Source: Bugula neritina (Eukaryota > Animalia > Bryozoa). From it: a stretch of 64,000 bases of DNA. The stretch spans positions 12,762,722 through 12,826,721 of the forward strand of contig OZ037766.1 of assembly GCA_964035545.1 (NCBI GenBank), given 5' to 3'. Position numbers and translations under genes: made by a program. Numbering within the stretch: the first letter of the stretch is position 1; every line of letters begins with the position of its first letter. Below are positions 692 through 26,157 of the stretch, one piece after another. Under the pieces are notes generated by a model. It was given only the letters and a program-made list of their open reading frames with translations. It had not been told where the DNA came from and did no database searches.

Positions 692-2170
692 ATGAGCAAG
701 TTATACTCTCTAGTAATATTATGTCTGGCTGTTGGACTAGTAACTCCTCAGATACTGACTGATGAATGTCTCAGTTGCATAAGACAGGTACGGTGAATTT
801 ATTAGCCTTAGAACCTTATATATACTATACCATCTGTATACCTTTAAAAGTTTAAAGAAGAGGGAATTAAGCTGCAAAAATTAATGCTTATCGTAACAGT
901 TTGATTGTTGTTTGATCATCACATTAATATCGTAATTAAAGAAACTGTTTAACTGATACAACTAAGTTGATGACATCGTTTGACAGAATAAGAAAGGTAG
1001 CAATACTTGCTCTTCTTGGAGCCTGATGCACAGTCAAACTTGTGGAAAGTATCTTATCACACATTCATTTTGGAATGATTGCGGTAGAAGAGGAGTTGGT
1101 GAGAAATGTTTATACATTATTTTATCTAAGTTATGAGAAATGTAGTTACTATAGTTTTTAATATAAGCTAAGACTACATCTAATACATAATAAGTTTTTG
1201 AAAATTGGTTTTTTAAATGGTTGGTTTAATGTAGAGACCAACTAAAATACTGGTGGCAATTAATTTTACCTGAGGCACTCTTTTTAAACCTATTCATAGC
1301 ATGCTTTGCAGCAATTATAATAAAATCTATTATATATAATAATAATTGCATTTTTATAGTTGAACTGAAACATCGATGAAAGTTTTCTTTATGTTATTTT
1401 TTTCGTTCCTACTCCACAAAGTAAAGCATTATTTGGAAACTATAAAATCTAGCTATTTTGCTAGTTTACGATGACTAATGCCTCTAAAGCAATTGAAACT
1501 CCAATTTGGTCAACAAAGTGTGTCAGCCAACGTTTTCTAATGCTTAATGCCACATCTTATGATATCGCTTATAAGCAAGTATTTATACGTGACTTAATGA
1601 CAAAATAGGTGATCTAGAGTAGAAGCAAAATGCTAGTTTGGCAATTCAAATTTCCAATCCACGCCAGCTTTAAATTTTTGAATTATACTTTATCTAATCT
1701 CTCAAATAAATTACTATTTATTCTGTTACATAACTAATTAGCAATGAATGCATTTATCAAACTTTCATATATATATTTTGCCTTGCTGGTTATAAAAGAA
1801 TGCACTTTTTTACAGACTATGACAATGTATAACAAATGCCTGCTTTTCCATAAGCGTCAATGTTATGACTGTTAATTTATTGCATAAATATTGCGCTTTA
1901 TATAAATATTTTTGATGAGCAAATTATACTGAAATTTCTTTTATTTCCATTTCAGGTTTTTCAGAGTGCACTAATGACAATCACTGTGCAGGAGAATGTA
2001 TGAGAACATACTTCCGGAGGTATGGTGAAAGATGTGCTAAGCAACTTAAAAAAGAGCCACACGAGTTAACCTGCGCAGACTATATCAGACTGCATGATGG
2101 AGGGCCGGATGGTTGTTCTAAGAGAGATACTCTCCCTAATGCTTACTCTCTAGGATTTTGTATGGACTAA
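692..2170 (+). CDS. i-type lysozyme-like paralog L1 (HDGG subfamily, predicted muramidase-dead); exons 692-787, 987-1098, 1956-2170
   Basis: GT-AG introns of phase 0 and 1. Spliced product MSKLYSLVILCLAVGLVTPQILTDECLSCIRQ|NKKGSNTCSSWSLMHSQTCGKYLITHSFWNDCGRRGVG|FSECTNDNHCAGECMRTYFRRYGERC...TCADYIRLHDGGPDGC...FCMD*. Signal peptide, 12 Cys, i-type H(N/D)GGPxGC motif. Confidence 0.92.
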
Positions 2171-2973
2171 AAAAACTATAGCAAACATGAAGATCTTGGT
2201 TATAAGTAGTATAAACTCTTGGCAGCTTTATTTCTACTTTCTTTTCTTTTTGGTTCGATGTAGAATTATTTTCTATTTGCCTCATTTTACCAGCATGTAA
2301 TATTGTGTATATATTAATTGTTGCTTGCAGCATAGCCTATGCGTGTGTATGTGCCATCAAACTAGACAGTCGAAAATGTTGTAGTAATAACTTGTTCTTC
2401 AAACCAGTTATTCATCTAGTTCAATTATCAATCTATTTTAAAGAAAAAAATGTTTTTATTCTTTAATAAAAATTAAATTAATAAAAAGTTTGCACATGTA
2501 AGAAGTTCCTTATTGCATTTTATTAAGTTGCTCATAGCTTCTGCTTTTTAGTTTTTGTTGAAGTATAATATAACTGAGTAGTGCATTCACGTTAACTTGC
2601 ATAACGTATAACTAATTGTACTTTATGCAAGTAAAAACCCGCATCCAGCCAATCAGTTATTAAACTTGTAATCATCTGCAGCTTGCTAATAACAGCTGTA
2701 CATATTGTGGAAGAGAGGTTAGTAAATAGACAGTTCACAAAATGTATATTATTATTTTATGTGAAGTTGGAGTATTTTGTTGATAAACACAAGTGAAGCA
2801 AGTTCTTATAATGCATGGTATTGCATTAATTATATTAAATAAATTGCAGAATGTATTTTTAATTACTAGTAAGAAAAAGAAAAACTTTCATAGATTTCGA
2901 AAGAGAAAATGAAGCCAAGCAAAGAATGTTAATAATACCACTAGCAAGTAGCAGTTTATTGCTTTTATTGGTT

Positions 2974-4269
2974 CTAATGAGCCATACAATGATTTACTTT
3001 GCTCCTAGCCTCTTCTGTATTTCCATGTGCACATCCATCAGGTCCGCCATTGTGCATTCTTATATAATCTCCACATTTCAGCTGGTATTGCTCTATATTC
3101 AAGTGTTCAGCACATCGAGCAGCATATCTGGTGAAATATACTTGCATACACTTCTCAGCACACAGATCATCATTAGCACACCTCTCAAATCCTGTAAACC
3201 AAAACAAAGACCTTATTTAATGCTTTGAAATATTCAGTATTTGTGTTTGTATCATTGCTACAAGTTGTTTTACTGGAAGTGGTTCATATATTTTACAAAT
3301 ATATACAAAAGTTTTTTTTAGTGCATACTTTGTTAACAAATGTGTTGCTTCAACTTCCAATGCTCCTTCTTTAAACCAAGGTTGTAATAAAGTAAATTCA
3401 CTGTTTTTGAGTTTAAAACTTACTAATAGGTGTAAGCTAGCCATAAATGCAAACACCCATTTAATTTATTTAAAATAATCATAAAAGCTGTTTATATCAT
3501 AATTATAATCTATGAATTATAATTACTTTACTTCTGATGTTCGAATAAAATATATTACTCGTTTGTTATATATTATAGTTTATATGTACTATGATATCAC
3601 TAATACCTTCTGAATAAAATCAAAACAAGACTTAACCCAACATTGAACTAGTTAATGATTTACATTTATAACCACCTAAAAAGAATATACTTTGAAGTTT
3701 ATGCAACTTTTCAGGTTTAAAACATAATCTGCATGTATTTTTAAAATCATAAATTATAATGAGCATCAAAAGACTAAAGCTAAACTTAACAAGTGCTATA
3801 GTTCAAAAGCTGTTACAGCTACACTTAGCCATTATACAAATCTCTTCATTAGTAATAAGTAGAATCCTAAAACTTATGATTGAAATGATTTTTCAATTTA
3901 GTTTAAAAAAATGGTTAAACTCACCATATCCTGGTCTACCACAGGCATCCCAAAAGGCTTCTGTCATGACATATCTACCGCAGTAATTTGTCCGGTAGTT
4001 CCTCCTGCACTTATTCATTCCAGTTCTTTTATACTAAAAATAACACTTCAACATAATTTTTATATATGCATGCTAGATAATAACTTGCATAATTTATCAA
4101 CTCAGCTGCAGAAAGATGGATGAATATATTATAGCAATCTTATCTAATGAACTGTTCAAATACACAGTACCTGTCTAATGCAGCTGAAGCACTTGTCATT
4201 CAGTGTCTGGGGAGTTACCAGTTCAAGAATCACCATCAATACCAGACACACTGTGTATATTTTTGCCAT
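2974..4269 (-). CDS. i-type lysozyme-like paralog L2 (HNGG subfamily); exons 4269-4171, 4033-3925, 3191-2974
   Basis: MAKIYTVCLVLMVILELVTPQTLNDKCFSCIRQ|YKRTGMNKCRRNYRTNYCGRYVMTEAFWDACGRPGYG|FERCANDDLCAEKCMQVYFTRYAARC...YIRMHNGGPDGC...HCMAH*. Canonical splice sites, open frame. Confidence 0.93.
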
Positions 4270-4575
4270 AGTTTGCTGTCAAACATTTTAAAGAAACCTT
4301 TCTCGGCAATCATGTCAATCATATCAATATAAAATTACGCAACAATAACTTCAATTTCTTGCAAACAAATTACTTTTATTATAAACTATTTATTCTGTGT
4401 AAGCATTACAGATAAATTTTCTTTTAAACTCTATATTTTGAACAGCACAAGAAACTTACCTTTTAGCTAAATATTAACCTGATTCCTGATACAACACCTT
4501 ATGCTGTGTAGACATTGAAGAAATAATCTTTCAGATGTTAAATTTGCGGAGGACAATATATTATTATAATATAAA

Positions 4576-4664
4576 GCAAATGCATGTTGACAGTTTATCT
4601 AATACCTGTTATTGTAGTGCTGCATGCAGAGTCAACTTTGTATTAAATATCCAACCTTTCAATT
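4576..4664 (-). promoter_or_regulatory. Conserved upstream element of HNGG-subfamily genes (copies ~7818-7902, ~12318-12410, inverted ~17172-17258)
   Basis: Near-identical GTTGACAGTTTATCTAATACCTGTTATTGTAGTGCTGCATGCAGAGTCAAC block just upstream of the non-coding first exon in four genes. Contains a GATA motif (AGATAA on the gene-sense strand). Confidence 0.55.
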
Positions 4665-6082
4665 ACGGAGTTGCATGTTATTATTTTACGCAGTCTTGAA
4701 AAATTCATAATCAAATATAGCTAAACCTATATTTATAAAAGCATGTTATATTATATGATACACGCAGTATATAAATAGCACTCTGTATTATATCTAATCA
4801 TTTATAAAGCTATACCCATAATTACAAATTTGCAGTTGCATATAACTGGCATAATTATAGATGTTGTAATACTTGTTAAGATATACAACTTTATTTTCTG
4901 CTTTCAAGAAACCAACTGAACTCTAAACTAACTCAGGATACACAACCTCATTAAACAGATTATTATTGCATCATCAAAATATAGAATATCTGTCTGCTTT
5001 GTTCAATATTATGTTCTTTTTAGTGCTGAAAATTTATTGCATATGTACTCTTGAATTTCAAATTATAACATTCTTAATCCTTATATATTTATTTCATTGT
5101 GATAAACAGCTCACAGAAACTGCTATAACTAATTATTCTTATGGATTACCTTGAAAAATTTAACTGGCATTACTGCAAGCAAATTTATATTGTATAGATA
5201 TTATTTTCAACATTTCTCTATTGCATTTTTACTTCCTAATCTGATGATTGCAATAGTCAATACTGTAAAGTAAGCTTGCTAATATTTTCAAATAGAAGCA
5301 TTTGAAATTAGCTAAAAACTCCAGATGAAAAGGTCTTTCAAAGCAACTAAAATAATATGTTGATGTGGCACGTGAGCAACTATGACTATAAATGAGTTTC
5401 CTAACAGAACCACTAGTGTTTGGATTTAAACCGCTGACCTCATGTAGTGATTCAAGTACCGAACAGTACTTAAACCACTACACCACGCTTGCTCCCTTTA
5501 TTAAACAGTTGATGTCATATAAATATTTAACCAATTAATTAGTCATCAAGAGTTTTAAATATGTTGAAAGATATATCCTGATGAAGAATTCAAAACTCTT
5601 ATGGCTAATAGTCACCATCTCTGTGAAAAAAACCTCAGATGATAGAGTCTTTTAAAGCATACTTAAGAAAATTTTTATACGACACTGGAACTTAACCATG
5701 ACGTTTCTCCTAACATCACCACTGCTAGGGTTTGAGTTCAAACCACTGACCTCATGTTTATTATTTACGCCATGACCATGGGCATAATATAAATATTTAA
5801 CCAATTAATTAGTCATCAACAATTTCATAGAGGACTCTGTTAAACTAGCCTAACTGACTAAAAATATATTTGTTAATATTAAATTAGTTTGAACATTTGT
5901 TTTATTTATAAAGAGAAATCAATTACACATATTTTCAAACATGCAAAAACTTTAAGCATGTGATTAAGTATTACTGTCAAAAAAAATTTTTCATACATTT
6001 GCAAACTGGATTTATTAAAGCCAAGCAACAATGTTCATTAATATTTTTTACCAGCATGTTGTAAATTATTGTTTTATTGGTT

Positions 6083-7530
6083 CTAATTGGCCATACAATG
6101 ATCTACTTTTTTCGCAGCATCCATTGTACTTTCTTGCGCACAGCCATGCAATCCCCCATTGTGCATTCTTATATAATCTCCACATGTCAGCTGATATGTC
6201 TCCTTTTTCAAATCTTTAGCGCATTGGGTAGCAAATCTGCTGAAAAATACTTTCATGCACTTCTTGGCACACCAATCATCACTAGTGCACTCTCCAAATC
6301 CTGTAAACCAAAACAACAATTTTAGAATATTTTCTAGTATTATATAGTCTGTGTTGTGTGTGTTGTGTATGTGTTGGGTGTGTTGTGTGTGTTGTGTGTG
6401 TTGTGAGTGTTGTGTGTGTAGTGTGTGTCATGTGTGTTGTGTGTGCCGTGTGTGTCTCGTGTGTGTTTGTGTGCAGTGTGTGTTTGTATCAGTGTCATAA
6501 GTTGTATTAGAAGAAGCGGCTAATATATCTCATGTTTTACATCAGAGCATTTACCGAAACTTTTTATTCAAACTCTTTGGTAAAAATATGTGCTGCTTTA
6601 AATTCTGAAGCGCATTCCTCAAACCTAGTTTTTAGTTAAATAAATTTACCATTGTTGAGTCTAACACCTACTAGTAGTTGTAACCTTGCCATAATTGTAA
6701 GCAACATATTAATTCCTTTATAATACTTATAAAAGCCATTAGGTTACAATTATCACATCTTAAAGTTTTCTGCTGCAACCTCTGAAGTTAGACTAAAATA
6801 AATTTATGCTGTGTTATGTATAAAATACTATTATATGCAATATGATAGTTAAGCACTATGACTTTCAAAACAGAATCAAAACATGGCTGTATCGAACATA
6901 TTGGACTATAGTTTCTGGTAATTCATATCTATAACTAAACTAAAAACAACATACTTTGAGGCTTATAAATTTTACATATTTAAAGCAAAATATGAATTTT
7001 AGAAATTATTATATTATAATTAAATTTTAGAATGAACATCAAAAAAAACAAAAGCAAAGATGATGAAGTGCCACCAGTTTAAAACCACTATACAGTTATG
7101 TTTAGCCATTGTAAATTTCATCACTATAGTAATTAGTAAAACCATAAAACATACAATTGAAATTTAGCTAAAAAATGATTGCTCACCAGATCCTGGACTA
7201 CCACAGGCCTCCCAGAAACCTTGTGTAATGATATATCTGCTACAATAGGTCTCTCTGCCGCGAGTGTTGCATAGTGGTGATCCACCAGTTTTATACTAGA
7301 AACAACAATTCAATATTTTTTATATTCTGGTAATAATAACATTTTTAATGCCTAATTCAAGAATTCAGCTACAGAAATATAAATAAATATATAGCAATCT
7401 TATCTAATGAATGGTTTCAAATACACAGTACCTGTCTAATACAGCTGAAGCACTCTTCAGTCAGTGCCTGGGAAGTTACCAGTTCAAGAATCACCATCAA
7501 TACCAGACACACTATGTATATTTTCGCCAT
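6083..7530 (-). CDS. i-type lysozyme-like paralog L3 (HNGG subfamily); exons 7530-7432, 7295-7187, 6300-6083
   Basis: MAKIYIVCLVLMVILELVTSQALTEECFSCIRQ|YKTGGSPLCNTRGRETYCSRYIITQGFWEACGSPGSG|FGECTSDDWCAKKCMKVFFSRFATQC...HNGGLHGC...HCMAN*. Confidence 0.93.
6348..6485. repeat. Imperfect (TG)n / TGTGTGTTG microsatellite in intron 2 of L3
   Basis: Visible TG-rich tandem tract; a counterpart lies at the same intron position in L7. Confidence 0.9.
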
Positions 7531-8477
7531 CCTTTTCTGTCAAATATTTTGAATAACTTTTTTAGACAATTATATAAATATACAATTACATAACAGTATA
7601 AAATTCAATTGCTTGTAAAAGACTGCCTTTAATACTTGTTTGTGTCAAAACAATACAAATAAAGCATATTTTAAACAACACTAGTATCTTACCTTTTAGC
7701 TATAGAATAAGTGTGAATTACCTTAACTGCTGATACTAAAACTTATGCTGTGGACACTGAAGGAGTGGCCTTTCAGATGGTAAACTTGCAGAAGGAATTG
7801 CATTAATATAATATGATGCAAATGTTGACAGTTTATCTAATACCTGTTATTGTAGTGCTGCATGCAGAGTCAACCTTGTATTAAATATCCAACCTTCCAA
7901 TTATAGAGACGTTATTCTTTTACACAGTCTTGCGAAATTTATAATTCAACAGCTACTTTTTCATATATAAAACATTTAAAGAAATAATATTTTAGACCAC
8001 CACTGCTCTATAATTGGCATTTATTGATATATTATACGATACACATTCGTAGTAGGCAATACAAATAACAGTCTGTATTATATTTAATCATTTTGTAAAG
8101 CTACTTATAATTACAAATGCGGTTGTATATAACTGGCATAATTATAGATCTTGCAATGTTTGTTTTTCACATTACCCGCATTTTTCTGCAACTGTGCTAA
8201 ATGGCCTTCATTTTGAACAAACATTCGACTCAAAGAACGACATTAAGAGATTTATGGCTTAGAGATGTGCATGACACCAGCACTGAAGATGCTCTGCATT
8301 GTCAACCCCGACAGACTATTGCTTCTCTCAATACTTGTCTAGATATACATCTTTATTTTCTGCTTTCAAGAAACCAATTGAACTATAAACTAACTCAGGA
8401 TACACAAACTCATTAAACAGAGTAGTAACCAATCATTAGGCAACATTCCGCCTACTATATAAAATGTCTTGCAATTT

Positions 8478-8690
8478 TACAGTCACTATCCCTGTGAGAA
8501 CCCTTGATGGAAAAGATTTTTCCTTAAAGTAGGCTAATAATGAAGACTTATTCATATGTGACACAGGAGCAATTATGGCTAGATCATGCTCTTCCTAACA
8601 TCACCAATTGCCTTTACTGAGGTTGAAACACATAACTTTATGTTTATTTTAAACAAACGCTCTAAGATTTAGACAACGGCTTCTTCCAAT
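8478..8690 (-). mobile_element. SINE family A copy. Other decayed copies at ~5320-5495, 5610-5760, 10800-10975, 12833-13015, 19340-19495(+), 48355-48490, 58975-59160
   Basis: Shared GAGAACCC(C)TGATGG / ACAGGAGCAATTATG / CTTCCTAACATCACCA motifs. Confidence 0.7.
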
Positions 8691-9683
8691 ATTCCAGTCA
8701 ATAGAACTTTATTGAAAATTTCAATAAAATACAATATGCAGAAATGCTCACATGGTATTACAAGGAAGTGAACCAAGAATATTAAACCACATCACTTTTT
8801 GAATTTTAGAATAAATATGATGACTTTATAAAGTTGCTACAATTAATACTCATAAACTTTGCTATCACTTTCATTGTCAAAATTTATTTCCACAACCAAC
8901 GCTTCATCTTCTGAAAGTTGAGACAGTTACAATAGCCAAATTTAATTGTCCAATCCAAATTTGGTAATTTTATATCAACTTTATATGTTATATTATTGCA
9001 GTGAAATACTTAAATCCCATTACATATAGTGACATGCATCACAATCTATTATCGTTATAGCTATAGAACATTACACACATGTGTAACACCAGCGCCAATC
9101 TGCTCCAGGCTTTAATGTCAACAGCTGAATGCTCTGTTTCCTATACTTACCTGGTGCTGCATCAATCCGCTTCTAAATTTCACACTTCTGAGCAATTTTT
9201 TCAACAACCTGCATTTTAATATTACTTAAAAATCTTTTCTACTAAAATGTATACATCATTTGTTTAACTCCTAAATGGTTTTACATGTGTGTGCATCTCT
9301 AGTGCTGTTATAGAATAATGTGTCTCTGTTTTTGCCTTAACTTCTATGCATGATGGCATTAAAGGAATAGTAGCTTTGGCAATTGAAGCAATACTTTAAA
9401 CACTTTAGCCAGATTACATGTCTTGCTCTTGGCTGATTTTATGAACACTATGCTATAACAATATATAGACAGAGTTATAGTTTTAGAAAATTTCAGCGAT
9501 CATCCTTAGATGATTGTTAGTCTACATTTCTTACAGTTCACTCACCTAGATTGTGTGGCAGTCCAACATTTAAATTTATATAATGTTAAATACTTTAGCA
9601 ACAGCTATTATATATAATATATGCTTTTATGATTGTTACACTTAGGTTTGAGTGGATCTACAAGCTACATTATGCTGGATAGA

Positions 9684-10031
9684 ATGAGCAGAAAAATTTA
9701 TCTGGTAATATATTGTTTATAAGATATATGTTAAGAACTGGCTATCTCTCAGATACATGTTGATGGTTGTCTTAGCTGTTTAAGACAGGTATACTGTTAT
9801 TTCAATTTTATAACCAAAAAAAACAATTGAAACTAATTAAATTTTGATATAGCAATTCATCTATATATACATGTCTATTCAAAATTTGATGGTTTGCTTT
9901 TCTATTTTTGTTTTTCTGAAGGCATAAAAATGGTGTTAACAAATGTTACTAGAAATATAGTAGCTATAATTTTTGTGGAAAATACATAATAACACCACTT
10001 TTTAGCATGCTTCAGGTAGAAAATAATTTGG
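9684..10031 (+). pseudogene. Decayed lysozyme-like pseudogene L4 (exon 1 and exon 2 remnants; most similar to L6)
   Basis: ATGAGCAGAAAA...TGTCTTAGCTGTTTAAGACAG|GT (9684-9788) with two in-frame TAA. Exon-2 remnant ~9921-10031 (..KNGVNKCY*KYSSYNFCGKYIITPLF..) with stops and a frameshift. Upstream flank matches that of L6. No exon 3 found. Confidence 0.85.
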
Positions 10032-11276
10032 TGAGTTGTAGCGCTGCATGTTATATGTTCTAAGCAATTAACAGCTTTATTTTGCTAAAATGAAAATGTT
10101 GCAAGTTTATTTGGTTTAAAGTGTTTTGTTTAGTTGTAATATGTTTGCTCAAATTATAGGTAAATTGAATCTAAAAATACATAAATTAAGCTAACAAACT
10201 AAGTCTTTATTGGAGAATATATTAACTAAAGTATGCCATAAAACAATGACTCAATTTGTATCTTTAATTCAAATGTCAAACATGATTATTGGAATTTATC
10301 TGATATTTATATTATACTTTTTAAAGTTTAGTTTAAATAGATATTTTGATACTTTATAAAATAATTGAATGTAGAAAAAACTTTTTTATTATTTATATGC
10401 AGCACAAATTTTTTAACTATAAAAACTAGTTAAGTGTTAACTTCAAAAATGACTTAGTACGTTATTTTGACTTGTATGTACTTATAAATTTCAAATAATA
10501 TTCTTATATCTTATTTGTATGTGATGTATTGTATTGTTTAACAAAAAAACTGACAAAATTGCTGATATAATCTTAGAGATTAAATTAGAAGATGTAAATG
10601 GCATTATTTCAAGCAAATTTATATTGTAGATATAATATTTTTAACATTTCTCTATTGCAATTTTATTTCCTAATTAGACGATAGTAGTAGTCAACACTTT
10701 ACAGTGAATTTATTAATACTCTGAAACAGAAATATCTGGAATTAGCTAAAGCTGGTCCAATAAACAAATGTATTTAGTATATTCCAGCTGTTAGTTAAGC
10801 CCTTGATAGAAAATTTTTTTTTAAAGAGGACTAATGTTTTTTTGGTGTGGCCCATAAGTGACTATATGCGACTATAAATGCTGCACCTATAAGCATCACC
10901 ATTGGTGCTTAGATTTGAACCCCTCACCTCATGCTTATTAGGCCAGTACTTGAACCACTACACCACAACTGCTACTTTCACTGAATATTTCAGCCATACA
11001 AATTTAATCGAATAATTAGTCAAAAAAATTTATAGATAAATCTGCAGAACTAATCTAACTGACTAAAAATATATTTTTCCTTAATATTAAATTCACACCA
11101 TGCTTTTGAACATTTGTTTTATTTAAAAGAAGAAATCAATTACACATAACTTTAGATATGCAAGAACTTCAAGCTGTTGAGTGAGTATTACTATTAAGAA
11201 AAAGAAGAACTTTCATACATTGTAAATTAGAAATTGAAATCAAGCAATAAGCAGCAGTTTATTGCTTTTTTAGGTT

Positions 11277-12004
11277 CTAATTGGCCATACAACGATCTAC
11301 TTCTTTCGCAGCTGCTTCTGTACTTCCTTGTGCACAGCCACCAGGTCCTCCGTTGTGCATTCTTATATAATCTCCACATGTCAGCTGATATGTCTCCTTT
11401 TTCAACTCTTTAGCACATCGAGAAGCATAACTGTTGAAATATACTTTCATACACCTCCTAGCACACCAATCATCGCTAGTGCACTTCACAAACCCTGTAA
11501 ACCAAAACAACGATTTTTTAAATATTCTATGAAGTGCTTTATCAGTTTGAAAACCGTTACAACTATTATTAACCATAATAAATGCCATCACTATAGAAAT
11601 TTATAGTAAAACTTTAAAACATAAAATTAAAATTTAGCTTAAGAATGGTTGCTTACCAGATCCCAAACTACCACAGGCCTTCCAGAATTCTTCTGTAATG
11701 ATATATCTGCTACAATAAGTTTCTCCGTGGCGCCTGTTGCAAATGTCTGATCCACCAGTTTTATACTAAAACAACAATATAATATCTTTTTATGCTTTGG
11801 TTTTAATAACATTTTGATGCAGAATTTAGCAATTCAGCTGCAAAAATGTGGATCCATATATAAGTGATTTCATCTATAATGAGCAGTTCATATACACAGT
11901 ACCTGTCTGATACAGCTGAAACATTCTTCAGTCAGTGTCTGAGAAGTTACCAGTTCAAGAACCACCATCAGTACCAGACACACTATGTGTATTTTTGGCG
12001 TCAT
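11277..12004 (-). CDS. i-type lysozyme-like paralog L5 (HNGG subfamily); exons 12004-11903, 11765-11657, 11494-11277
   Basis: MTPKIHIVCLVLMVVLELVTSQTLTEECFSCIRQ|YKTGGSDICNRRHGETYCSRYIITEEFWKACGSLGSG|FVKCTSDDWCARRCMKVYFNSYASRC...HNGGPGGC...RCMAN*. Intron 2 is shortened to 162 nt. Confidence 0.93.
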
Positions 12005-14122
12005 TTTCTGTTGAACATTATGAATAATTTTTTTAGACACTTACTATATCAATATACAATCATAACACAACAATAACTTGAATTTCTAGCAAAAGTTGTC
12101 ATAACCTGCACTTAATTTACTTCATCTGTCAAAACAATACAATTGAAGCTTCTGTCAAGCTGCATATCTTAAACAGCACAAGAAACTTACCTTTTAGTTA
12201 AAGATTGAATGTAACTTTACCTGATTATACGGACACTAAAACTTATGCTGTGGACACTAAAGGAGTAGCCTTTCAGATGGTAAACTTGCAGAAGAAATCA
12301 CATTAATATAATATGAAGCAAATGCATGTTGACAGTTTATCTAATACCTGTTATTGTAGTGCTGCATGCTGAGTGAACTTTGTATATTAAACATCCACCC
12401 TTTCAATCATGGAGCTGTCATTATTTTACACAGCCTTATGAAATTTATAATCAAATAGCTAAATTTGTATTTATAAAAACATGAGTTGAAATAAAATCTC
12501 AGACCAACGCTGCTCTATATTTAGCATCTATAGTTATATTATATGTTACACACAGTATATAAATAGCACTCTGTATTATATCTAAACATTTATAAAGCTA
12601 CCCATAATTACAAATTTGCAGTTGCATATAACTGGCATAATTATAGATGTTGTAATACTTGTTTAGATATATAATTTTATTTTCTGCTTTCAAGGAACCA
12701 ACTAAACTATAAACTAACCCAGAATACACAAACTCATCAAACAGATTATTATTGCATCATCAAAATATAGAATGCCTGTTTAACTGCAGCAGAAGGCAAT
12801 ATTCCACCTACTGTAAGAGAACCTCATGATCTATGTGAGAACCCCTGATACAATGGTTTTTTTTAAAAGGACTGAAGATTTATTCAAATGTGACACAGGA
12901 GCAATTATGACTGAATGCTTCTGCTAACGTCACCAATGGCCTTTACTGGGGCTCAAACCCATGACTTTGTGTTTACTAAGCCAATGCTCTAGGCTTTAGA
13001 CAACGGCTTCTCCCTATATTCCAGTCACTATATGACTTTATTGAAAATTTCAATAAAATACAATATGCAGAAATGCTCACACAGTATCAAAAGTAAATGA
13101 ACCAAGAACATTTACAACCGCATCACTTCTTGATCTTTAGAATAAATACTACAGCGTTATAAAACTGCTACAATTAATACTCATAAGCTTTTTAAAATGC
13201 AGTGGTGGTCTTCTATCACCCATTACTCTGCAATACATAACCTATTTTCACCATTATTGCCATCAATTTAATTGTCAAAATCTGCTTCCACACCCAGCAC
13301 TCTATCTTCTGAAGATGTGAGACAGTTATATACAAGAATTAACTTTACCTGTTCAGCCAGAGTTCGACAATTTTATATCGTCAACTATATGTGTTACATT
13401 ATCTCAATGAATTACTATTTTGGTATCTGAAACAAACACTTTTGCTTTTCTTTCTGGTCATGTATGCAGCAGTGCATTTAAAGTCGAAAAGTTTCACAAC
13501 CATTATATTTTGTTACAATTACTTCTCTATGCATTTCAAAGCACCTGATGGCATGCTTGTAGACTTGTTGATTGAGTATAGCATTTTTTATATTAGATAT
13601 ATAATTGCCATAAAAAAATATTAATATTTCAGTGACAATTTTCAAAGTTCTAAATTTATAGATACCAAAATGTCTTATATATAAGAAATTTGATAGTTTA
13701 TGCACTGCATTACTTAGTTTAATTAAATTTTATTTATTTTTGATCAACTAGAATTCACTGTGCAATCTTGTGAACAGTAAAAAGATATAGAATGAACACA
13801 AAGTGCTGATGCTTGCCATATCAATTAAACTGATGTCTGTATGAAAATGCATAACTTGCATTATCTGTAACACATTTACTAAGATAACATTATTTTTTAT
13901 AACCAACAGAGCATATATGCGAAGTTTAAAAAAGTGTTTTTTGCACTAACAGCTTTATTTGTTGAATATATATATATATATTACACATGTCATTAAATTG
14001 GATAGTTCTTGCACACAAACATACTTTTCATATCTTAGTTAGTTAATATTAATAAGGTTAATAGATATTGAATTGATGGAAGTATACAAGAGAAACTGTT
14101 ATTTTAAGTAGATGAAAATTAT

Positions 14123-16005
14123 CTAAGGACGACGGCCATTAAGTAGTAAAACATTCATATCTGTCATACAAGCATTTATCCATCCTGCAGCTTCTTCAGT
14201 AGAAGACTTTGAACATCCATCAGGTCCTCCATCATGCAGTCTGATATAGTCTGCACAAGTCAGTTCTGTTAGTGGTTTATTCAACTGTTTAGCACATCGT
14301 TCACCATACCTGCTGAAATATGCTTTCATGCATTCCTCAGAGCACTGATCATCTCTTGCACACTCTGCAAACCCTGCAAATAGAAAAACTGGAATAACAC
14401 GAGTGTAACATCTATAGTTAATAGGTCACATATTATAAGTGTGAATAATGCTAGCAATTAGTACTGTAAAACGCAATATCTATGCATGTTATCAATTTAG
14501 ATATGTTTAGTAATTAGAAGAATATACAACTAGTTTATATATATTAAGTTTGTAAAATGGAAGAAAAACTGTATGCCCCAAGTTGCTTGTTTTTTTATGC
14601 ATTAAAATGTGTCAGATCATTTTATTATTAGCTAAAATATTGAAATATAAGAGTTTAGACTGCAGTTTTAAAGAGTTGCTACATTTTAACAAAAGTATTT
14701 TTATTAAAAACGTTAAATTGGCTTTACTAATTTTGTGGCATGCAGCATAATCTATACTTAAAATTGCCAAAATATTTTACTTTACCAATTATAAAGTATA
14801 TTGACTTTTAAATGTCTCCACAGAGCCTTGTACCATATTTTAAAGTTAAAACATCTAGCAAAATTTGTTTAAAATTGTCAAAGTCCTAAATGTGGAAAAA
14901 GTTGATCAAAGATTATAAGTATTTCTCTTGGTTAGCTATTCTTACAAATATCATGTTATATCAAAATACTTTTACAAAAGTTTATTAACACGTTTATTAG
15001 AATGAATTCAATATACATGATCATTTTTCCATCTGAATTGATTGAAGGAACCTCAAAAAATCAAACCATGAATTTATTAATAGTTTTATAACACTCTATC
15101 AGCTTAAATTGAGTTCTTTTAAATACACTAAATAAAAAATCACACAATTTTATAGTCGCCATCCTTGTGAGAAACCCCTGATGGAAACGAAAGGGTTTTT
15201 GTTTAAGCAGGTTAAGGACTTGCTTTAGATGAGACAGAGGAGCTGATGCTCTTCCTAACATCACAAATGGCCTTTGTCGGGTTCGAACCCATGACTTCGT
15301 GTTCACAAAGCAAACGCTTTAAACCCTAGACCACAGCTGCTCCCTCTTTAAATACATTAAATACTAAATACTACTTTAATATATTAAATCTAATCAACTG
15401 CACCTACTACAAATAAGGTATTTAAATTATAACTTAAAAAGTTTTTGAAAAATAAACCTTGGTGCTTAAAGCATATACCATGCTTGTTTGTATTTTCAAC
15501 TAATACTGTTAGTACGGTCAGCCATTGCTATTTTCGAGTTAGACAAATAGTCATACTTTTGAAAACTCCAAGTTGTATGCAACATGATAATTCTTCAAGT
15601 AGTATGAAGCAGCTTTACGATTAGTAAAGTTCAACTCACCCATTCCTTTTTGACCACAAGCATGCCAGAAAGGTTGTGTGATTATGTAATTTCCACAAAC
15701 ATAACTGCCATATTTCCAGCTGCATCTGTTATCACCATCTTTACGCTGCATGTCAGAAGCAACAAAATTAGGCAATCATCACGATGCTATATTGATTATA
15801 GATATATAGACATGGCTACATCAGTATTTAAATAGTTTATTACAATTTATAGCATTTTTGTTCAATAACAAATTGAAATAATCATCTTTAGGCATATTCC
15901 TTATCATACCTGTCTTAAACAGCTGAGACAATCATCAGGCAGTATCTGAGAAGTTACTAGTCCAACAGCCAGACATAATATTACCAGAGAATTTCTTTTT
16001 CTCAT
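14123..16005 (-). CDS. i-type lysozyme-like paralog L6 (HDGG subfamily); exons 16005-15910, 15745-15640, 14373-14123
   Basis: MRKRNSLVILCLAVGLVTSQILPDDCLSCLRQ|RKDGDNRCSWKYGSYVCGNYIITQPFWHACGQKGMG|FAECARDDQCSEECMKAYFSRYGERC...HDGGPDGC...ACMTDMNVLLLNGRRP*. Confidence 0.92.
15134..15345 (-). mobile_element. tRNA-derived SINE, family A
   Basis: Minus strand begins GGAGCAGCTGTGGTCTAGGG (box A)...GGTTCGAACCC (box B), then core GATGTTAGGAAGAGCATC and a T-rich tail. About 10 diverged copies in the window. Confidence 0.85.
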
Positions 16006-17567
16006 TTTATCCAGTATAGTGCAGCTTCCAGATCTACTCAAGTGTGAACATAACAATCAGAAAATTATATTATAGAACAGATCTGTTGATCATTTTAAAT
16101 AATTAGGCATTTGGATTTTATGTAAATATAATATTCATAATGTTTATAGCAGTTTCAATAGCTCATCATGTTTTTATTGTAAAAATAAGTTACAATGACA
16201 ATTCTATGTAAAACAATGAATGAGCTAAAAAGGTAAACTTAGATGTGTACAGTAAAACTTTGAATCAAATTAGTAATGACACATTTGCTTACCTGTAATG
16301 CAAAGGGGAGTCACAGCAGAAGAGGAATGATGTAAGTTAAGGAAACAACACACAGATGGTACATAATGATTGAGAGACAAATAACAATTAAGTACTGTGT
16401 TTACTGGTTATCTTGATGATACCTTGATGTGATATGCAAGATGATTATATGTTAAGTACATATCATTAGGTAACTGGTTGACTTGCTATAACCCAATCAG
16501 CTACAATCTATAGTTAGAGTATTTAAAGGATTTTCTGCAGATTCCAGGATAATTCTGGTGTGTCAAGTGGAATCTGCAGCTATTTTAGTTGGCAGAACTC
16601 AGGTTCCGTGCAAAAAACTCTGTTTATTTGTGGGGTCATTTTTTGAGTTACTATAAACAAGCATTCTATATACACTGGATTTCCATTACTTTACATCATT
16701 CGAATGAATGCCATAAATGCATTTGTGGTCCTGTTTAAGTAAGAACTTATGGTTGTGCATGGTTGTAGTAACTGTTTCCAAAAATTAAGTTGCATAATTC
16801 AATCTTGGAAACCAGTGCTAGGCTCTAATTGTCTAATATAAAACACATAATTTACTCCGAAGTTATATATTGCACCTCATTTGTAATTTATAAATGAACA
16901 GATACAAAACAGACTGCCAGATATATAATGATATAAGTGCATCATATAATATTTCTATAAATGCTAGTTGTAGTGCAACAAATCTGTAATTATGGGTGTT
17001 TCATAAATGATTAAATATAATACAGATTGCTATTTATATACTATGCGTATCATATAATATAACTATAAATGCCAATTATAGAGATTTTATTTCAACTCAT
17101 GTTTTTATAAATAAATATTTAGTTATCTGATTACAAATTTCATAAGACTGTGTAAAATAATAACAGCTCTATAATTGAAAGGTTGGATATTTAATACAAA
17201 GTTGGCTCTGCATGCAGCACTACAATAACAGGTATTAGATAAACTGCCAACATTTGCATCACATTATATTAATGCAATTCTTTCTGCAAGCTTACCATCT
17301 GAAAGGCCACTCCTTTAGTGTCCACAACATAAATTTTAGTGTCCGTAATCAGATAAAGTTACATTCAATCTTCAGCTAAAAGGTAAGTCTCTTGTGTTGT
17401 TCAAAACATATATAACAGCTTATATAATTAACAGAAAATTGATTTGTACTGTTTACAAAAATAGATAGTAAAAATAATTTGTGTGCAAGAAATTGAACAT
17501 ATTTTTGTGTAACTGTATAATGACATGACAGCCAAAATATGTTATTCAAAATATTTGACAGAAAAGG

Positions 17568-19013
17568 ATGGCGAAAATATACATAGTATGTTTGGTATTG
17601 ATGGTGATTCTTAAACTGGTAACTTCCCAGGTACTGACTGAACAGTGCTTCAGCTGCATTAGACAGGTACTGTGTATTTGAACAGTTCATTAGATAAGAT
17701 TGCTATAATATATTCATCCATATTTCTGCAGCTGAATTGTTAAGTTCAGCATCAAAAGCTGTATTATTACTAGAATATTAAAACTTTTTTTCAGTATAAA
17801 AGTACAGGTAGAAGCAACAGGTGCGGTGCGAACATCTTAAATTTAGGAAACGCCTCTTGTGGCAGATATGTCATCTCAGAAGCTTTCTGGGGTGCATGTG
17901 GTAGACCAGGATCTGGTAAGCAACTAAATTATTCTAACTAAATTTGGAATGTATTTCAATTACAAGTTTTAAAGTTTTACTTATTCCTAATTATGGCATT
18001 TAAAATGGTTAAATATATAGCAGTAGACGTTTTTAAATTGCTGGCACTTCATCAACTTTAGCTTTAGTTTTTGATGCTCATTATAGTTTAAAACTCTAAC
18101 ATTCATATTTCGCTTCACACATAAAACTATATAAACCTAAAAGTAAAATATTCTTATTTTAATAATGGCAAATCATCATGAGCTAGTTGATATAGTTTTC
18201 ATATCATAAGTTGGGTGCATACAGTCAGGGTTTGATTCTGCATGTTTTAGTAATATATTACATATTAGTAACATCTTATTACATATTAGCAGTACCGTAT
18301 TACATTTTATAAGCAGCATTATATTACATATTGCTGGCATCATATATTACGTATTACTATAGTAAACTTTATGAAGAAGTTATCAATCTATTTTAATCTG
18401 AGATCAGAGGCACTGTGAATGTTACCTAATAGTTTTTATATAAGTATTTTATGCAAACCAAAGAAGTGTTTACTGCAGCTAAGTGGCAAGCTTACAAATT
18501 TTAGTGAATTTTAGACTCAACAACATCTTGAAGTTAATTTATTACAAACCAACTTTAAAGAATGAGCATTGGAAATTAAAACAACACATTTCGTAACAAG
18601 TTACGCAAACAAAATACTTTTGTAAATGCTCTGGTGCAAAAATTATAAGATATGAGCTACTCTTTATTCAACAATACAACTTACATGCACACACGCACAC
18701 ACAACACACACGCACACACACAACACACACGCACACACACACACACGCACACTGAATACTATAAAGTATCATTGAATTGTTGTTTTGGTTTACAGGATTT
18801 GGGAGGTGCACTCGAGATGATTGGTGTGCTGAGAAGTGTATGCAAGTATATTTCACCAGATATGCTTCTCGATGTGCCAAAAAACTGAAAAAGGAGACAT
18901 ATCAGCTGACATGTGGAGATTATATAAGAATGCACAATGGTGGACCTGATGGCTGTGCTCAAGGAAGTACAAAGGATGCTGCGAAAGAAGTAGATCATTG
19001 TATGGCCAATTAG
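17568..19013 (+). CDS. i-type lysozyme-like paralog L7 (HNGG subfamily); exons 17568-17666, 17795-17915, 18796-19013
   Basis: MAKIYIVCLVLMVILKLVTSQVLTEQCFSCIRQ|YKSTGRSNRCGANILNLGNASCGRYVISEAFWGACGRPGSG|FGRCTRDDWCAEKCMQVYFTRYASRC...HNGGPDGC...HCMAN*. Probable non-coding first exon ends at AAAG|GTAAGT ~17382. Confidence 0.93.
18686..18752. repeat. Imperfect (CA)n microsatellite in intron 2 of L7
   Basis: Visible CA tandem tract. Confidence 0.9.
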
Positions 19014-20383
19014 AACCAATAAAACAATGGTTTGCAACTTGCTATAATAGCGGAAATGTTATTAAACACATTTGCTTGGCTTTAGTTTTAAGTTTGCAAT
19101 GTATGAAGGTTTTTCTTTTTCTTAACAGTAATACTTAATCACCTGCTTAAAGTTCTTGTATGCTTGAAAATATGTAGGATTGATTTATCCATTTAAATAA
19201 AACAAATGTTCAATTGGTGTGAATTTATTATTAAAAAATATATTTATCAGCTAGTTATCAGGCTAGTTTAGCAATTACATCTATATTAACTTCTTGTTGA
19301 CCAATTAAATGGTAGATTATTTATATAATGCCCATAGTCATGGCTTTAAAAACATGAGGTCAGTAGTTCGAATTCAAACACTAGCCGTGATGTTAAAAGA
19401 AGCATCCGGTCATGGTTGTTCCAGTGTGACACTAAACAATCTTTAGTTTGCTTTAAAAGACTCCTTCATCTGGGGTTTTTACAGAGATGGTGACTATTAT
19501 AGCCATGTGAGTTTTGAATTCTCCATCAAAATATATCTTTCAACATACAAAGTAGTTTGCAATTTATATACGGAATATAATTTCATACTTGTGTACCTTT
19601 AGGCACTGAGTTCAAATATTTCTATTTTAGAATATTAACAAGCTTACTTTGAACTCTTGACTATTTCAATCATTAGATTGAGAAGTAAACATGTTATATA
19701 ATTGAAAAAAATAATTGCAAGTAATACCTGCAAGATAAGTTTGCTTGCAATTTCAACCCCATTTCAATTTTCTTTCCTAAACTTGTCTAAGCTCCATAAC
19801 GAAGCCTGGCTAAAGTAAATTTTCATAGAAAGTATAATAATGTGAGTAGTATGAATCAGCATTGATACACTTCTTATACAGCTGCTAAGCATTAGTAATC
19901 TGCATAAGTTTGAATAGAAAAAGATCTTAAGAGTTGCACTGCTGGATATATCCAGATTAGGTTTTATATAAAACTAAGCAACAGGGGCTAAGCTCTTGCT
20001 ATCAATATGTATAAAGCACTGCAGTTTCATAAGTTTGTCTCTATATAGATTCAGCCAATACAGGTTGCATAAATTAGGCAAGTATTCTAATTACTTCATT
20101 CGTAGGCTTTTTACTTGACTTGATAAAGTTTTAATTGATTTGTTTCGGCAAAACACTTTACAATCAAAGTTGAAGTTTAAATGTTTTTGTAAATATATTA
20201 TTTTTTTAATTTGCATAATTTATCATACTAAATATTTATTATAACTAATGCAGTATGAGTATTGTATTATATTGTATTTTATGCATATGAACATAAACAC
20301 ACACAATCGTATCATTGGCAATCCGCAAAAAAATCAATTTTGTTTTTTTAATAATAAATAGGTTAATCAGCTGTCACAAGAAC

Positions 20384-21570
20384 ATGGGTAAAGCTCTCTT
20401 CCTTGTAATACTGTGTCTGACTGTTGCTCTGGTAACATCTCAGTTACTGACTGAGAAGTGTCTCAGTTGCATCAGACAAGTGAGTCATTCAAAATTCATT
20501 TATTTCTTATTTCCTATTTCTTACTAAATTGATTGTTTAAGATAAAGAATAAAGTTTTAACAGCTCTAGCATAATCTAAACTTATCTCATTCAAACAACT
20601 GTAGGCTATAGTTGTGCATGCCCGTCCAAAATATTTAGTTTTATACTATTTTCATGCAATTAGCTTATATATTAACAGAAAAAGAATGGCCCAACTGAAT
20701 GCCGCTGGGCATCTGGTCACCTGTCTTGTGGAAAGTATTTTGTCTCAGAAGAATTTTGGGTTGCTTGTGGCAGCATAGGATATGGTGAGTGCATTGTAAA
20801 TTATACTGTTTTATGTCATTAATACTCTAAAGAAATAAACATTTTCCCATCACCTCCATTAGGTACGCAGGTATATATCTGAAAAACAATAATCTTCACT
20901 TCTCAATTCTTATTCATCTCCTTTAAACACTGATGTTTTATAGCTTTGCCTACATTGCATTTACTTGGCATGTTTTTTTAAAATCTTTCTGCACATTTCG
21001 AGAACATTTAGTATAACCAGCCCAAGAGATCTAAGCTGAGCACCCAATTGGTCATGGTATATCTTGCTAAATGAAAAACACTACAAGCCTGTTCAATTCA
21101 GTGTCATTGATGGTTCATATTTATTTATTGGTAATTCAATTTATTTCAGTAGTTTTATGAATGCAACCAATACATTTTGGTAGCCTGAAGTTATATTTTC
21201 ATATCACTGCCACTATCACTTTTTGAATGGATGTAAAGGTTTTTGCACTCTATGTGATTAATTGTAAAAGTAATAGTAAATAGTGAATTGTAGAGTGTTA
21301 TGTCACGTTGACTTTCTGGCAGTGCTAGTTTCAGCATAGCAGTTCTACTTTGCAGGATTAAAAGAGTGTGCCAATGATGATCAGTGTGCTGGGCAGTGTA
21401 TGAGGGCATACTTCAGTCGATATGGTGAAAGATGTGCCAAACAACTGAATAAAGAGTCATACCAGCTAACTTGTGGAGACTACATAAGACTTCATGATGG
21501 AGGACCTGATGGTTGTTCTAGATCAGACACTTTAGCAGCTTCTGAATCAATAGAAAGATGCATGGCATAA
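20384..21570 (+). CDS. i-type lysozyme-like paralog L8 (HDGG subfamily); exons 20384-20479, 20679-20784, 21356-21570
   Basis: MGKALFLVILCLTVALVTSQLLTEKCLSCIRQ|KKNGPTECRWASGHLSCGKYFVSEEFWVACGSIGYG|LKECANDDQCAGQCMRAYFSRYGERC...HDGGPDGC...RCMA*. Confidence 0.92.
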
Positions 21571-22523
21571 GATCTTCACTGCATTTTCATTGCTTCAAAT
21601 GGACTTTATAGATGCTCATAAGAAAATGGATTTCGGGTTACAGTTTGCCTTAACTTATGGTTCGGGGTTCTTTAATTGACCTGTCCCTAAGCATATAAAA
21701 AATCCATTTGCAAAGCAATGGGAACTAGTGCATAATATATTCATCTCATTTTAACTAAAAATGAGAGCTTTTAATCATAAGGCTGTTCATTATTGAAATA
21801 CCCATGCACTAGTTATAAATGTATAAGTTAATCATAACAGTGTTATCAGTCAGTAGCCTACTGATTGCCAACACTAAACTGCCTGTTCCTTTTTCACTTG
21901 ATTAACTTTGTTAATAATTTTAACTACCGTGTTGCATTTCTTGTCAGTTCTGGAAAATGACTATTCTGTTTTGGTGTGTAATATTTAAGCAAGTTTTCAT
22001 TATAGCTATATATTAGAAAGCTGATACTTGGCACATCCACACAATAAGAAATTGTCATCTGGTGGAGATGCTCTATGTTTTTAGATATGAAATACATTTA
22101 TTCTTCCACTAACTTATAGTCTTCTAGTGATTTTCTAAAGCTTAAAAACTAAATAACCATCATGTTCAATTATAATATATGTAAAGTTAATAATGAAAAA
22201 AAAAACTATACAGGTTTTACTATAGTGTGATAAAAGTAATGTCACAAGTACCACTTAAGTGTTGCATGAACAACCAATAGGGCAACAGCACATAAACTGG
22301 CTGGTTAGTGCTGTCTTCTCCCAAGTAAGTCATTTATAGATTTATAGAAGAAAATGATAAATAAATTATTGAATAAATATCATTGATTGATGAAAAGAGT
22401 TTGCAGAAGTTTATGATAGAATTTTCTGCACTGCAATATTAAACCAGACCCTAATATTCTGCAGGCTGCATGCATACAATAATTATGATGTAATATAGAG
22501 GAATAGCCAATACTGTGAAAATA

Positions 22524-22598
22524 GCTGTCCCTACTAGGAGTCGGAATGCAGTCGTCTAACATGCAAGCTAGCGTACTACCCATTACTCAATGGGGGAG
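22524..22598 (-). mobile_element. tRNA(Ala-TGC)-like SINE head, family B
   Basis: Reverse complement CCCCATTGAGTAATGGGTAGTACGCTAGCTTGCATGTTAGACGACTGCATTCCGACTCCTAGTAGGGACAGC; homologous to 23955-24030. Confidence 0.55.
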
Positions 22599-22838
22599 GG
22601 GGGGTGGTGCTACTGGGAAATTTTAGCATATGGCAAATACATATACTGCTGTGTTTATTTAGTACTCTATATATAAATTAAATTTTCCTTCAACTAATAG
22701 CTGTCTTATTATCAACGACCTGCTACCAGGACAGTGAGAAAAGTCACATTGCAGATAACTGTGATCACCCATTAGCGGATAGGAATAAAGATACAGTGCA
22801 GATTATTTCATTCCTTTGTTAAACATCAGCTTGAAAAC

Positions 22839-23782
22839 ATGAATAAAATATTTATTTTTATGTTCCTGTGTGTGGCTCTTGAGGTGTCAACTACTCAAGC
22901 TGCAGTGTCATCCTCATGTCTTGATTGCATTGGAAAGGCAAGGAATCGTGTGATTTTTCTCTGTGGTTGGACAAATCAGATGCAAGCCTGCAGCTTTCTC
23001 AAATATAGCTTTGGCTCTAAAATACGTTAAGTTTCGTAATGGAAAATGTTTTAACTGTTCTACAAACTTAAATTTTATGCTAAAGATATATAATTAATCT
23101 AAAGCTAAAATTAATTTCTATTTGTAGCCAACAGTAAAATGTATACATATAACTATATAATGACTCTATTTAAATAGGAAAATCTATTAGCATAAGTAGC
23201 ACATTATTTCAATTTTATATCAAACATAAATTCTTTTTTTTTCTATTTTAATGTTATTAATTCGTTATCATGTCATATTTTTAGACTTTGTACTGCATTT
23301 TCGTAGATCGAAGGAGGCTCAAAAGGTTGCAACTGGGATGTTGGCTCATATTCCTGTGGCAAATACCAAATCAAAAAGCCATATTGGTTGGACTGCTACA
23401 GCCCAGGATCTAGTAAGTAAATAATATAAGGTAATACTGTTGTAGAACTTAAGACTGCTGACTATCAGATTGCAAAAATATCCTTTAATAAGGAAAAATA
23501 GATAACTGTCAAACATTTTATTACGAAGGCTCATTTTATAAACTTGAGAGTCTATGGATTTCAGGCTGGGAGTCGTGTGCTGCTAATGAAGAATGTTCAA
23601 GAAGATGTATGGTGGCATACCTCAACAGATATAAGTCTCTCTGTGCTAGAGATTTGGGTAAAAGTGCATCCAGCCTAACATGTGAAGATTATGGAAGATT
23701 ACATAATGGTGGTCCAGCTGGATGTAGAAAAAGTGCAACTCTATCTTATGCTACTAAGATGCGAAGAAGTTGCAATATTTAA
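22839..23782 (+). CDS. Canonical i-type (invertebrate/destabilase) lysozyme L9; exons 22839-22937, 23307-23412, 23565-23782; intron 1 is GC-AG
   Basis: MNKIFIFMFLCVALEVSTTQAAVSSSCLDCIGK|IEGGSKGCNWDVGSYSCGKYQIKKPYWLDCYSPGSS|WESCAANEECSRRCMVAYLNRYKSLC...TCEDYGRLHNGGPAGCRKSATLSYATKMRRSCNI*. Retains catalytic Glu (IE) and Asp (WD), SCGxYQIK, YWxDC and HNGGPxGC. Confidence 0.95.
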
Positions 23783-24788: not shown

Positions 24789-24799
24789 CTGCCCCCTCC
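24789..24799 (-). promoter_or_regulatory. Polypurine tract
   Basis: GGAGGGGGCAG abutting the 3' LTR. Confidence 0.8.
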
Positions 24800-26140: not shown

Positions 26141-26157
26141 GGATAGGAATACAAGAC

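Follow-up and report, generated by a model that had tools for sequence, protein, structure and literature searches.

What becomes of a lysozyme scaffold once its catalytic residues are gone is the question raised by a tandem gene array of the bryozoan Bugula neritina. The part of the array considered first lies in a stretch of 64,000 nucleotides (assembly GCA_964035545.1, contig OZ037766.1, named C2 below, positions 12,762,722 to 12,826,721 of the forward strand), which we call the window and to which positions refer unless a contig is named. A previous interpretation of this DNA, made from its letters only and termed here the sequence-only reading, had described seven secreted pseudo-lysozymes of the i-type carrying Lys in place of the catalytic Glu, next to one intact lysozyme, with a common exon structure and 12 Cys, and all of these elements could be rebuilt. 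By a six-frame scan of positions 1–24500 followed by codon-level inspection, we identified between 692 and 23782 eight intact three-exon genes of the destabilase/i-type lysozyme family (PF05497) and one decayed fragment. Seven of the eight genes belong to a larger clade of Lys-bearing copies (hereafter the Lys clade) which is under purifying selection, the Lys being one of its most constrained sites. The gene models are given below, with the pair of residues opening exon 2 in brackets.

692–2170, plus strand: G1, Lys clade (N-K), 140 amino acids; exons 692–787, 987–1098 and 1956–2170; exon 3 scores 46 bits on PF05497; 12 Cys.
2974–4269, minus strand: G2, Lys clade (Y-K), 141 amino acids; exons 4171–4269, 3925–4033 and 2974–3191.
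6083–7530, minus strand: G3, Lys clade (Y-K), 141 amino acids; exons 7432–7530, 7187–7295 and 6083–6300.
About 9735–10000, plus strand: decayed family member, consisting of a truncated exon 2 and a remnant of exon 1 that lacks both start codon and leader, detected with the six-frame scan and exon hidden Markov models.
11277–12004, minus strand: G5, Lys clade (Y-K), 142 amino acids; exons 11903–12004, 11657–11765 and 11277–11494.
14123–16005, minus strand: G6, Lys clade (R-K), 150 amino acids, with a longer C-terminal tail; exons 15910–16005, 15640–15745 and 14123–14373; exon 3 scores 42 bits on PF05497.
17568–19013, plus strand: G7, Lys clade (Y-K), 145 amino acids, with a loop four residues longer; exons 17568–17666, 17795–17915 and 18796–19013.
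20384–21570, plus strand: G8, Lys clade (K-K), 138 amino acids; exons 20384–20479, 20679–20784 and 21356–21570.
22839–23782, plus strand: L9, canonical i-type lysozyme/destabilase-like gene (I-E), 140 amino acids; exons 22839–22937 (GC donor), 23307–23412 and 23565–23782; exon 3 scores 47.8 bits on PF05497.

The eight genes follow a single exon plan, the first junction being in phase 0 and the second in phase 1. Exon 1 encodes a hydrophobic N-terminal leader, predicted in every one of the genes, and ends directly after a C-x-x-C-x-x-x motif; exon 2 starts one codon ahead of the catalytic Glu position and exon 3 encodes the remainder of the domain. Counted from the CxxC motif onward, each gene has 12 aligned Cys. 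Splice sites are GT-AG throughout with the sole exception of intron 1 of L9, where a GC donor (GCAAGG) was accepted because it restores the fixed CxxC-to-Glu spacing of the family, and this intron would thus be of the GC-AG type. In the decayed copy, exon 3 was found neither by the six-frame scan nor with the exon models. Membership of the family is supported by the exon 3 pieces of all window genes, which match the Pfam Destabilase profile with 42–48 bits against a cut-off of 26.2 bits, and by a weaker match of the exon 2 pieces to positions 20–44 of the same profile (14–21 bits). A whole-genome scan recovered the same loci. The best match of L9 exon 3 in the PDB is leech destabilase (8BBU, 2.4e-14), and the PDB sequence matches are i-type lysozymes only.

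The seven Lys genes reported by the sequence-only reading are indeed present; they turned out to be only part of the Lys clade, whose 12 intact genes lie in an array of at least 17 genes running about 40 kb past the window start. Our modelling covered nine genes upstream of the window and one gene, B1, located 230 kb away. The nine upstream genes are intact and map to C2:12728600–12760600, about 2–34 kb before the window start. Five of them (U5–U9) carry the Lys, preceded by Lys or His (K-K or H-K). The remaining four (U1–U4) and B1 have kept the Glu, have lost the Asp of the catalytic pair and carry T, S or N at the position of Lys58 of leech destabilase. U5, U7 and B1 (C2:12.53 Mb) all lack two Cys, that following F-W-x-x and that preceding M/I-x-x-Y-F, indicating a repeated loss of one disulfide.

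In leech destabilase, Glu34 and Asp46 are required for muramidase activity, and Ser49/Ser51, Lys58 and His112 have been proposed to serve isopeptidase activity (PMC10126035). L9 keeps all of these residues (Glu, Asp, Ser49, Ser51, Lys58/59 and His112). In contrast, the catalytic Glu (Glu34 of destabilase, Glu18 of the Tapes lysozyme) is Lys in the seven window genes and five upstream genes, and the catalytic Asp (Asp46/Asp30) is missing from all seven Lys genes of the window, which have S, N, R, R, K, N or A in this column. The YQIK motif has become Y-x-x-T/S (YLIT, YVMT, YIIT, YVIS or YFVS). The exon 2 pairs, the missing Asp and the altered YQIK had all been listed from the letters and match the rebuilt models. 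As to the isopeptidase residues, the Lys clade keeps only His112, which is invariant; Ser49/51 are not conserved, Lys58 is replaced by Thr or Ser, and Glu34 by Lys. Part of the cleft lining is retained, namely F/Y-W and D-Y-x-R-x-H-x-G-G. Furthermore, the Lys clade is set apart from both the Glu-keeping sisters and the canonical copies by four fixed residues, namely the Lys at the Glu position, the Met that follows the eighth Cys, the Lys of R-C-A-K and the Ile of D-Y-I-R beside His112. This pattern suggests an active centre that was remodelled jointly.

The location of the Lys was examined on P0156, the ortholog of the upstream Lys-clade gene U5 in another B. neritina lineage. When P0156 was aligned with HMMER to PDB entries 8BBU, 3AB6 and 2DQA, its Lys fell on the catalytic Glu, as the sequence-only reading had it, and an Asn fell on the Asp. 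An AlphaFold model of the mature part of P0156, based on an alignment of 33 sequences, had a predicted local distance difference test value (pLDDT) of 96. It superposed on 8BBU with a template modelling (TM) score of 0.86 and a root-mean-square deviation of 1.7 Å, and on 3AB6 and 2DQA with TM scores of 0.80–0.82; significant fold matches in the PDB were i-type lysozymes only (TM 0.80–0.87). Sequence and fold alignment place the Lys at the predicted end of the first helix, where the family has its Glu.

The same residues bear on whether the Lys-clade proteins are still enzymes with a different chemistry, either isopeptidase- or protease-like and relying on His112 and the Lys, or a glycosidase relying on another acidic residue. 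It has been stressed that the catalytic residues are uncertain, and isopeptidase activity has been reported for arthropod i-type lysozymes devoid of Ser49/Ser51 (PMC10126035). His112, the Asp in C-x-x-D-x-x-C and the Asp in D-Y-I-R are moreover invariant in 12 of 12 genes, and the Glu-keeping sisters U1–U4 and B1 may retain single-acid catalysis. The invariant acids are, however, shared with canonical lysozymes or with the Glu-keeping sisters and are therefore not compensatory novelties, while the proposed Ser-His-Glu triad has lost both its Ser and its Glu, with no conserved Ser in the loop. To our knowledge, no glycoside hydrolase mechanism employs Lys as the acid/base. We consider a surviving enzyme of this kind unlikely.

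In order to establish how the Lys came to be shared, a maximum-likelihood tree was built from 25 mature domains. The 12 Lys genes fell on one side of a branch with 94/95 support, inside a group of 17 genes without the Asp (98/93 support) whose other five members keep the Glu; within the Lys clade, whose tree length is about 5 amino-acid substitutions per site, G3 and G5 paired with 100/98 support. Since the Lys clade is nested in a Glu-keeping, Asp-less group, the Glu-to-Lys replacement was a single ancestral event that was later retained. The charge reversal is thus present in all copies, as had been stated, but its invariance is the retention of one inherited change and not seven independent recurrences. 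An ancestral member of the array would have first lost the Asp and the lysine of YQIK, a state surviving in the five Glu-keeping sister genes. One G-to-A transition (GAA/GAG to AAA/AAG) could then have turned the Glu into Lys, upon which the Met after the eighth Cys, the Lys in R-C-A-K and the Ile in D-Y-I-R would have been fixed, with tandem duplication coming afterwards.

Retention of the Lys was next compared between orthologs and between paralogs. Seven ortholog pairs with the other B. neritina lineage were available, for G5 and G2 (JGI contigs), U3–U6 (GenBank contigs) and U7 (an mRNA contig). The G2 ortholog on JGI contig L049 is intact and keeps Y-K; the G5 ortholog on L048 is intact as well and has the Lys codon AAG where G5 has AAA. 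Exon 3 of the G1 ortholog was also found on L049 and exon 3 of the G6 ortholog on L050. Between orthologs, the ratio of non-synonymous to synonymous substitution rates (dN/dS) was 0.19 overall; the mature protein gave 0.13 when the loop that follows the Lys was left out, and the loop by itself 0.17. Pairwise values for the eight window genes ranged from 0.2 to 0.6. The nine codons from CxxC to the Lys displayed 0 non-synonymous against 8 synonymous differences in the ortholog pairs, and the Lys was present in all Lys-clade orthologs recovered. The alignment of the 12 paralogs has 114 mature columns, of which 35 do not vary, the Lys among them. Seven genes encode this Lys as AAA and five as AAG, never with a non-synonymous change, and the site has therefore mutated repeatedly without a change of residue. 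The sequence-only reading had contrasted a fixed Lys with freely varying neighbours. The Lys is invariant, but so is the C-x-S-C-x-R-Q preceding it, and free variation near the Lys is confined to the residue directly before it and the loop after it.

These values speak to the possibility that the seven genes are unexpressed duplicates in slow decay. The array does contain one decayed copy, and the search of public runs yielded no RNA run holding the window genes. However, all 12 Lys genes are intact, with canonical splice sites, at a synonymous divergence (dS) between copies of 0.3 to above 1, the ortholog dN/dS is 0.19 and a spliced mRNA of a clade member exists, so that decay is contradicted by these results and is hardly credible. 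The decayed copy at about 9735–10000 instead exemplifies what an unconstrained copy of this array looks like. The earlier preference for purifying selection over decay, which had been drawn from the fixed Lys and from intact frames, signal peptides and splice sites, is borne out by the dN/dS values of orthologs and paralogs.

The spliced mRNA is Logan contig L043 (963 nt, run SRR4020085), which contains the U7 ortholog in one open frame. It is colinear with exons 1–3 of U7 in the genome, both introns being removed at the modelled junctions; at least one Lys-clade gene is therefore transcribed and spliced as modelled. Positions 24–75 of L043 correspond to a spliced 5' non-coding exon that aligns to C2:12751437–12751488, about 430 bp upstream of the exon carrying the ATG, and comparable first exons may have gone unannotated in the window genes. 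In the sole public run holding window DNA, coverage is even across introns and spacers and joints are absent, and the run is therefore genomic and not RNA. The conserved exon 3 of G7 and that of G8 (18790–18989 and 21390–21589) have a summed contig depth in this run that is about threefold the level around them, probably reflecting words common to paralogs. Heterozygous variant contigs were also observed in exon 3 of G7 and in the exon 2/intron 2 region of G8.

What the constrained proteins do must be judged from the parts that stayed and the part that moved. The mature Lys-clade proteins have roughly 115–125 residues, are predicted to be secreted and have the destabilase fold. The loop between the Lys and the next C-G is their most variable part between paralogs, in which its length also changes: its proportion of non-synonymous differences (pN) is 0.54, and the ratio of this proportion to that of synonymous differences (pN/pS) is 0.75 against 0.41 elsewhere. 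Between orthologs, the loop is as conserved as the rest, a pattern that fits divergence among paralogs followed by constraint. Positive selection on the exon 2 loop was considered and is not supported, given the paralog pN/pS of 0.75 and the ortholog dN/dS of 0.17.

We lean, with slightly better than even confidence, towards the interpretation that the Lys-clade proteins are non-enzymatic secreted binding proteins which use the old cleft together with a paralog-specific loop. They would no longer hydrolyse peptidoglycan and would instead bind through the former substrate cleft, the Lys and the residues fixed with it giving the cleft a remodelled floor with positive charge; the loop in which the Asp formerly lay would set the ligand preference of each paralog, be it for microbial glycans or for other anionic surface polymers. 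A more specific version is tentative and rather doubtful: a diversified pattern-recognition family, with the fixed Lys and the Met, Lys and Ile as an anion-binding floor and the loop selecting the ligand of each copy, might sort microbes at bryozoan surfaces, possibly including the vertically transmitted, bryostatin-producing symbiont.

Besides the residual non-canonical enzyme activity discussed above, the main rival to a binding role is a generic antimicrobial one, in which the proteins would act on membranes non-enzymatically and the Lys would be an added charge or a tolerated inheritance, with no specific ligand recognized. Non-enzymatic antibacterial action has been described for lysozymes, including those of the i-type (PMC13736114), and the spread of the Lys among genes is partly inheritance since the Glu-to-Lys change was a single ancestral one. 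The proteins are not uniformly cationic, however: the mature forms have isoelectric points (pI) of 5.7–8.9 and net charges of −2 to +7, without surpassing the canonical L9 in basicity, and a description of the family as uniformly cationic was rejected on these values. In addition, the Lys has been kept over about 5 substitutions per site with turnover of its synonymous codons, which argues for a constraint on this site and not on bulk charge. We therefore give the antimicrobial explanation a low probability.

A decoy function would exploit the retained fold in another manner, the Lys-clade proteins soaking up bacterial lysozyme inhibitors of the PliI type and thereby sparing the canonical lysozymes, L9 and those of a second cluster on C1. 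The fold and the cleft shape are kept, the Lys genes adjoin a canonical lysozyme, and PliI binds the active site of i-type lysozymes (PDB 4PJ2 was among the matches). Yet the contact residues in the active centre are exactly those that changed, and the neighbouring loop varies by paralog, which is not expected of a mimic of one enzyme surface; we regard such decoys as very unlikely.

Several points weigh against the binding interpretation itself. The Lys could be kept for a structural reason, such as a salt bridge, and not for ligand contact. The invariant His112 and the isopeptidase precedent, some arthropod i-type lysozymes without Ser49/51 showing isopeptidase activity (PMC10126035), would leave room for a residual enzymatic role. 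The loop has a pN/pS below 1, so that diversifying selection is not demonstrated. The fold was modelled on an upstream ortholog with one disulfide fewer and not on a window gene, and the presumed placing of the Lys side chain within the cleft derives from sequence and fold alignment. Transcript support likewise comes from the U7 ortholog, no RNA-run match having been obtained for the seven window genes.

Across its own genome, an assembly of 216 Mb, the family comprises 28 loci by our scan, namely the array, the second cluster on C1 and a few dispersed divergent copies. The C1 cluster (C1:640000–680000) holds canonical Glu/Asp copies; three canonical or near-canonical copies with a separate leader exon were modelled there, along with one copy that has the Glu but no Asp and at least two that are broken or frameshifted. 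One divergent destabilase-like domain (C1:10369449–10369640, corresponding to protein P0093, B. neritina EB796_000493) carries a Gln in place of the Glu, and the GenBank protein P0093 continues after this domain into a C-terminal hydrophobic helix; judging from its sequence, it may be a membrane-anchored dead lysozyme. Outside this genome, relatives are few. A profile of the seven exon 3 peptides retrieved only 166 matches from 1.84 billion representative proteins, and the best of these were either B. neritina proteins belonging to GCA_010799875.2 or fragments that stem from JGI metagenomes and a single Logan assembly. A short query from the region of G5 exon 3 found the relatives P0003 and P0157 (57-residue open reading frame fragments), and a search of metagenome contigs for related loci, a collection from which records close to the window genome may be missing, confirmed no relative. 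One GenBank B. neritina protein is nearly identical to a gene just upstream of the window and others are 88–98% identical; with a proportion of synonymous differences (pS) of about 0.2 to the GenBank lineage, the window genome is a member of the B. neritina species complex that stands apart from that lineage.

Two kinds of repeated DNA were noted in and beside the gene array. Intron 2 of G3 and that of G7 each contain a CA-rich microsatellite shortly before exon 3 (6300–6500 and 18650–18760); the repeat is common to both paralogs and reads in frame as His/Thr or Cys/Val runs. Directly after L9, a long terminal repeat (LTR) retrotransposon occupies 24485–31937. Its two 300-nt direct repeats are 100% identical, and it contains a minus-strand open reading frame of 1325 amino acids (26158–30135) with reverse transcriptase, RNase H and integrase domains, in addition to two further open reading frames. 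Its GC content of 54–58%, against about 30% around it, gives it the appearance of a young insertion.

The array thus displays side by side a natural series from enzyme to conserved non-enzyme: L9, the Asp-less copies and the 12 charge-reversed copies, with purifying selection throughout. The question of what i-type lysozymes without the catalytic dyad do, so far mostly an insect one, becomes testable in a small set of close proteins, with binding, agglutination and other chemistry as candidate roles. We found no mention of bryozoan or Bugula lysozymes in the searchable literature, and this is a first account of the destabilase family in Bryozoa, a phylum for which hardly any immune effectors have been described and which has a bacterial symbiosis of pharmacological importance.

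The sequence-only reading had further presented the family as lineage-specific. With regard to the principle, this novelty was overstated, and the surprise is limited, a retained dead lysozyme being already known. Among the 150 nearest representatives, 81 destabilase domains could be compared, and the Glu is kept in 39 of them and lost in 42. Replacements such as Ser, Val, Thr and Ala occur in taxa that include mites, a centipede, a pseudoscorpion and a gastropod, and Ser or Thr at the Lys58 position accompanies the loss of the Glu in this sample, arthropod domains included. In insects the loss is the rule: their i-type lysozymes lack the dyad and are nevertheless conserved across Insecta, with binding or non-enzymatic roles proposed (PMC13736114, a 2026 survey, which cites Beckert et al. 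2016 on such dyad-less lysozymes). The Bugula genes resemble them in belonging to the Destabilase family, in having lost the Glu/Asp pair and in their long-term constraint. They differ in forming a tandem array beside a canonical copy, in comprising 12 paralogs with a paralog-specific loop, and in a replacement that is uniformly Lys, as opposed to mostly Ser, Val, Thr or Ala in other taxa. Within this genome, the tree of 25 mature domains, none of them from insects, derives the Lys clade from an array that includes Glu-keeping genes, which points to a bryozoan loss independent of the insect loss, and the likeness to the insect proteins is a functional one and not proof of membership.

Compared with leech destabilase and the bivalve i-type lysozymes (8BBU/8BBW, 2DQA, 3AB6), the Lys clade shares the fold (TM 0.80–0.87), the Cys framework, the H-N/D-G-G-P motif with His112 and a secreted single-domain architecture. 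Unlike leech destabilase, it is devoid of Glu34, Asp46, Ser49/51 and Lys58. The Bugula copies, L9 included, have 12 Cys against 14 in the leech and bivalve enzymes, the C-I-C...G-C pair being absent. Outside the i-type, alpha-lactalbumin, sperm SLLP1/SPACA3 and silkmoth lysozyme-like proteins have lost catalytic residues and reuse a lysozyme scaffold for binding or regulation. These proteins have c-type (GH22) folds, occur in vertebrates and Lepidoptera and are encoded by single genes or small families, and we know of no fixed Glu-to-Lys reversal among them. Such a replacement is found in the hypothetical protein KAI3387822 (P0045) of Seison nebaliae, whose destabilase domain carries Lys where the Glu is expected and Ser in place of Lys58, but which belongs to an unrelated lineage and differs by a longer N-terminal extension and by Leu in place of His112; Glu-to-Lys therefore arose more than once. 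A further apparent Lys case, P0135, was discarded as an alignment artefact in translated intron sequence. We conclude that a retained dead lysozyme is a known principle of which the Bugula case is an independent bryozoan variant, and that what is new in Bugula is the uniform charge reversal, the radiation into 12 genes and the persistence of living intermediates side by side.

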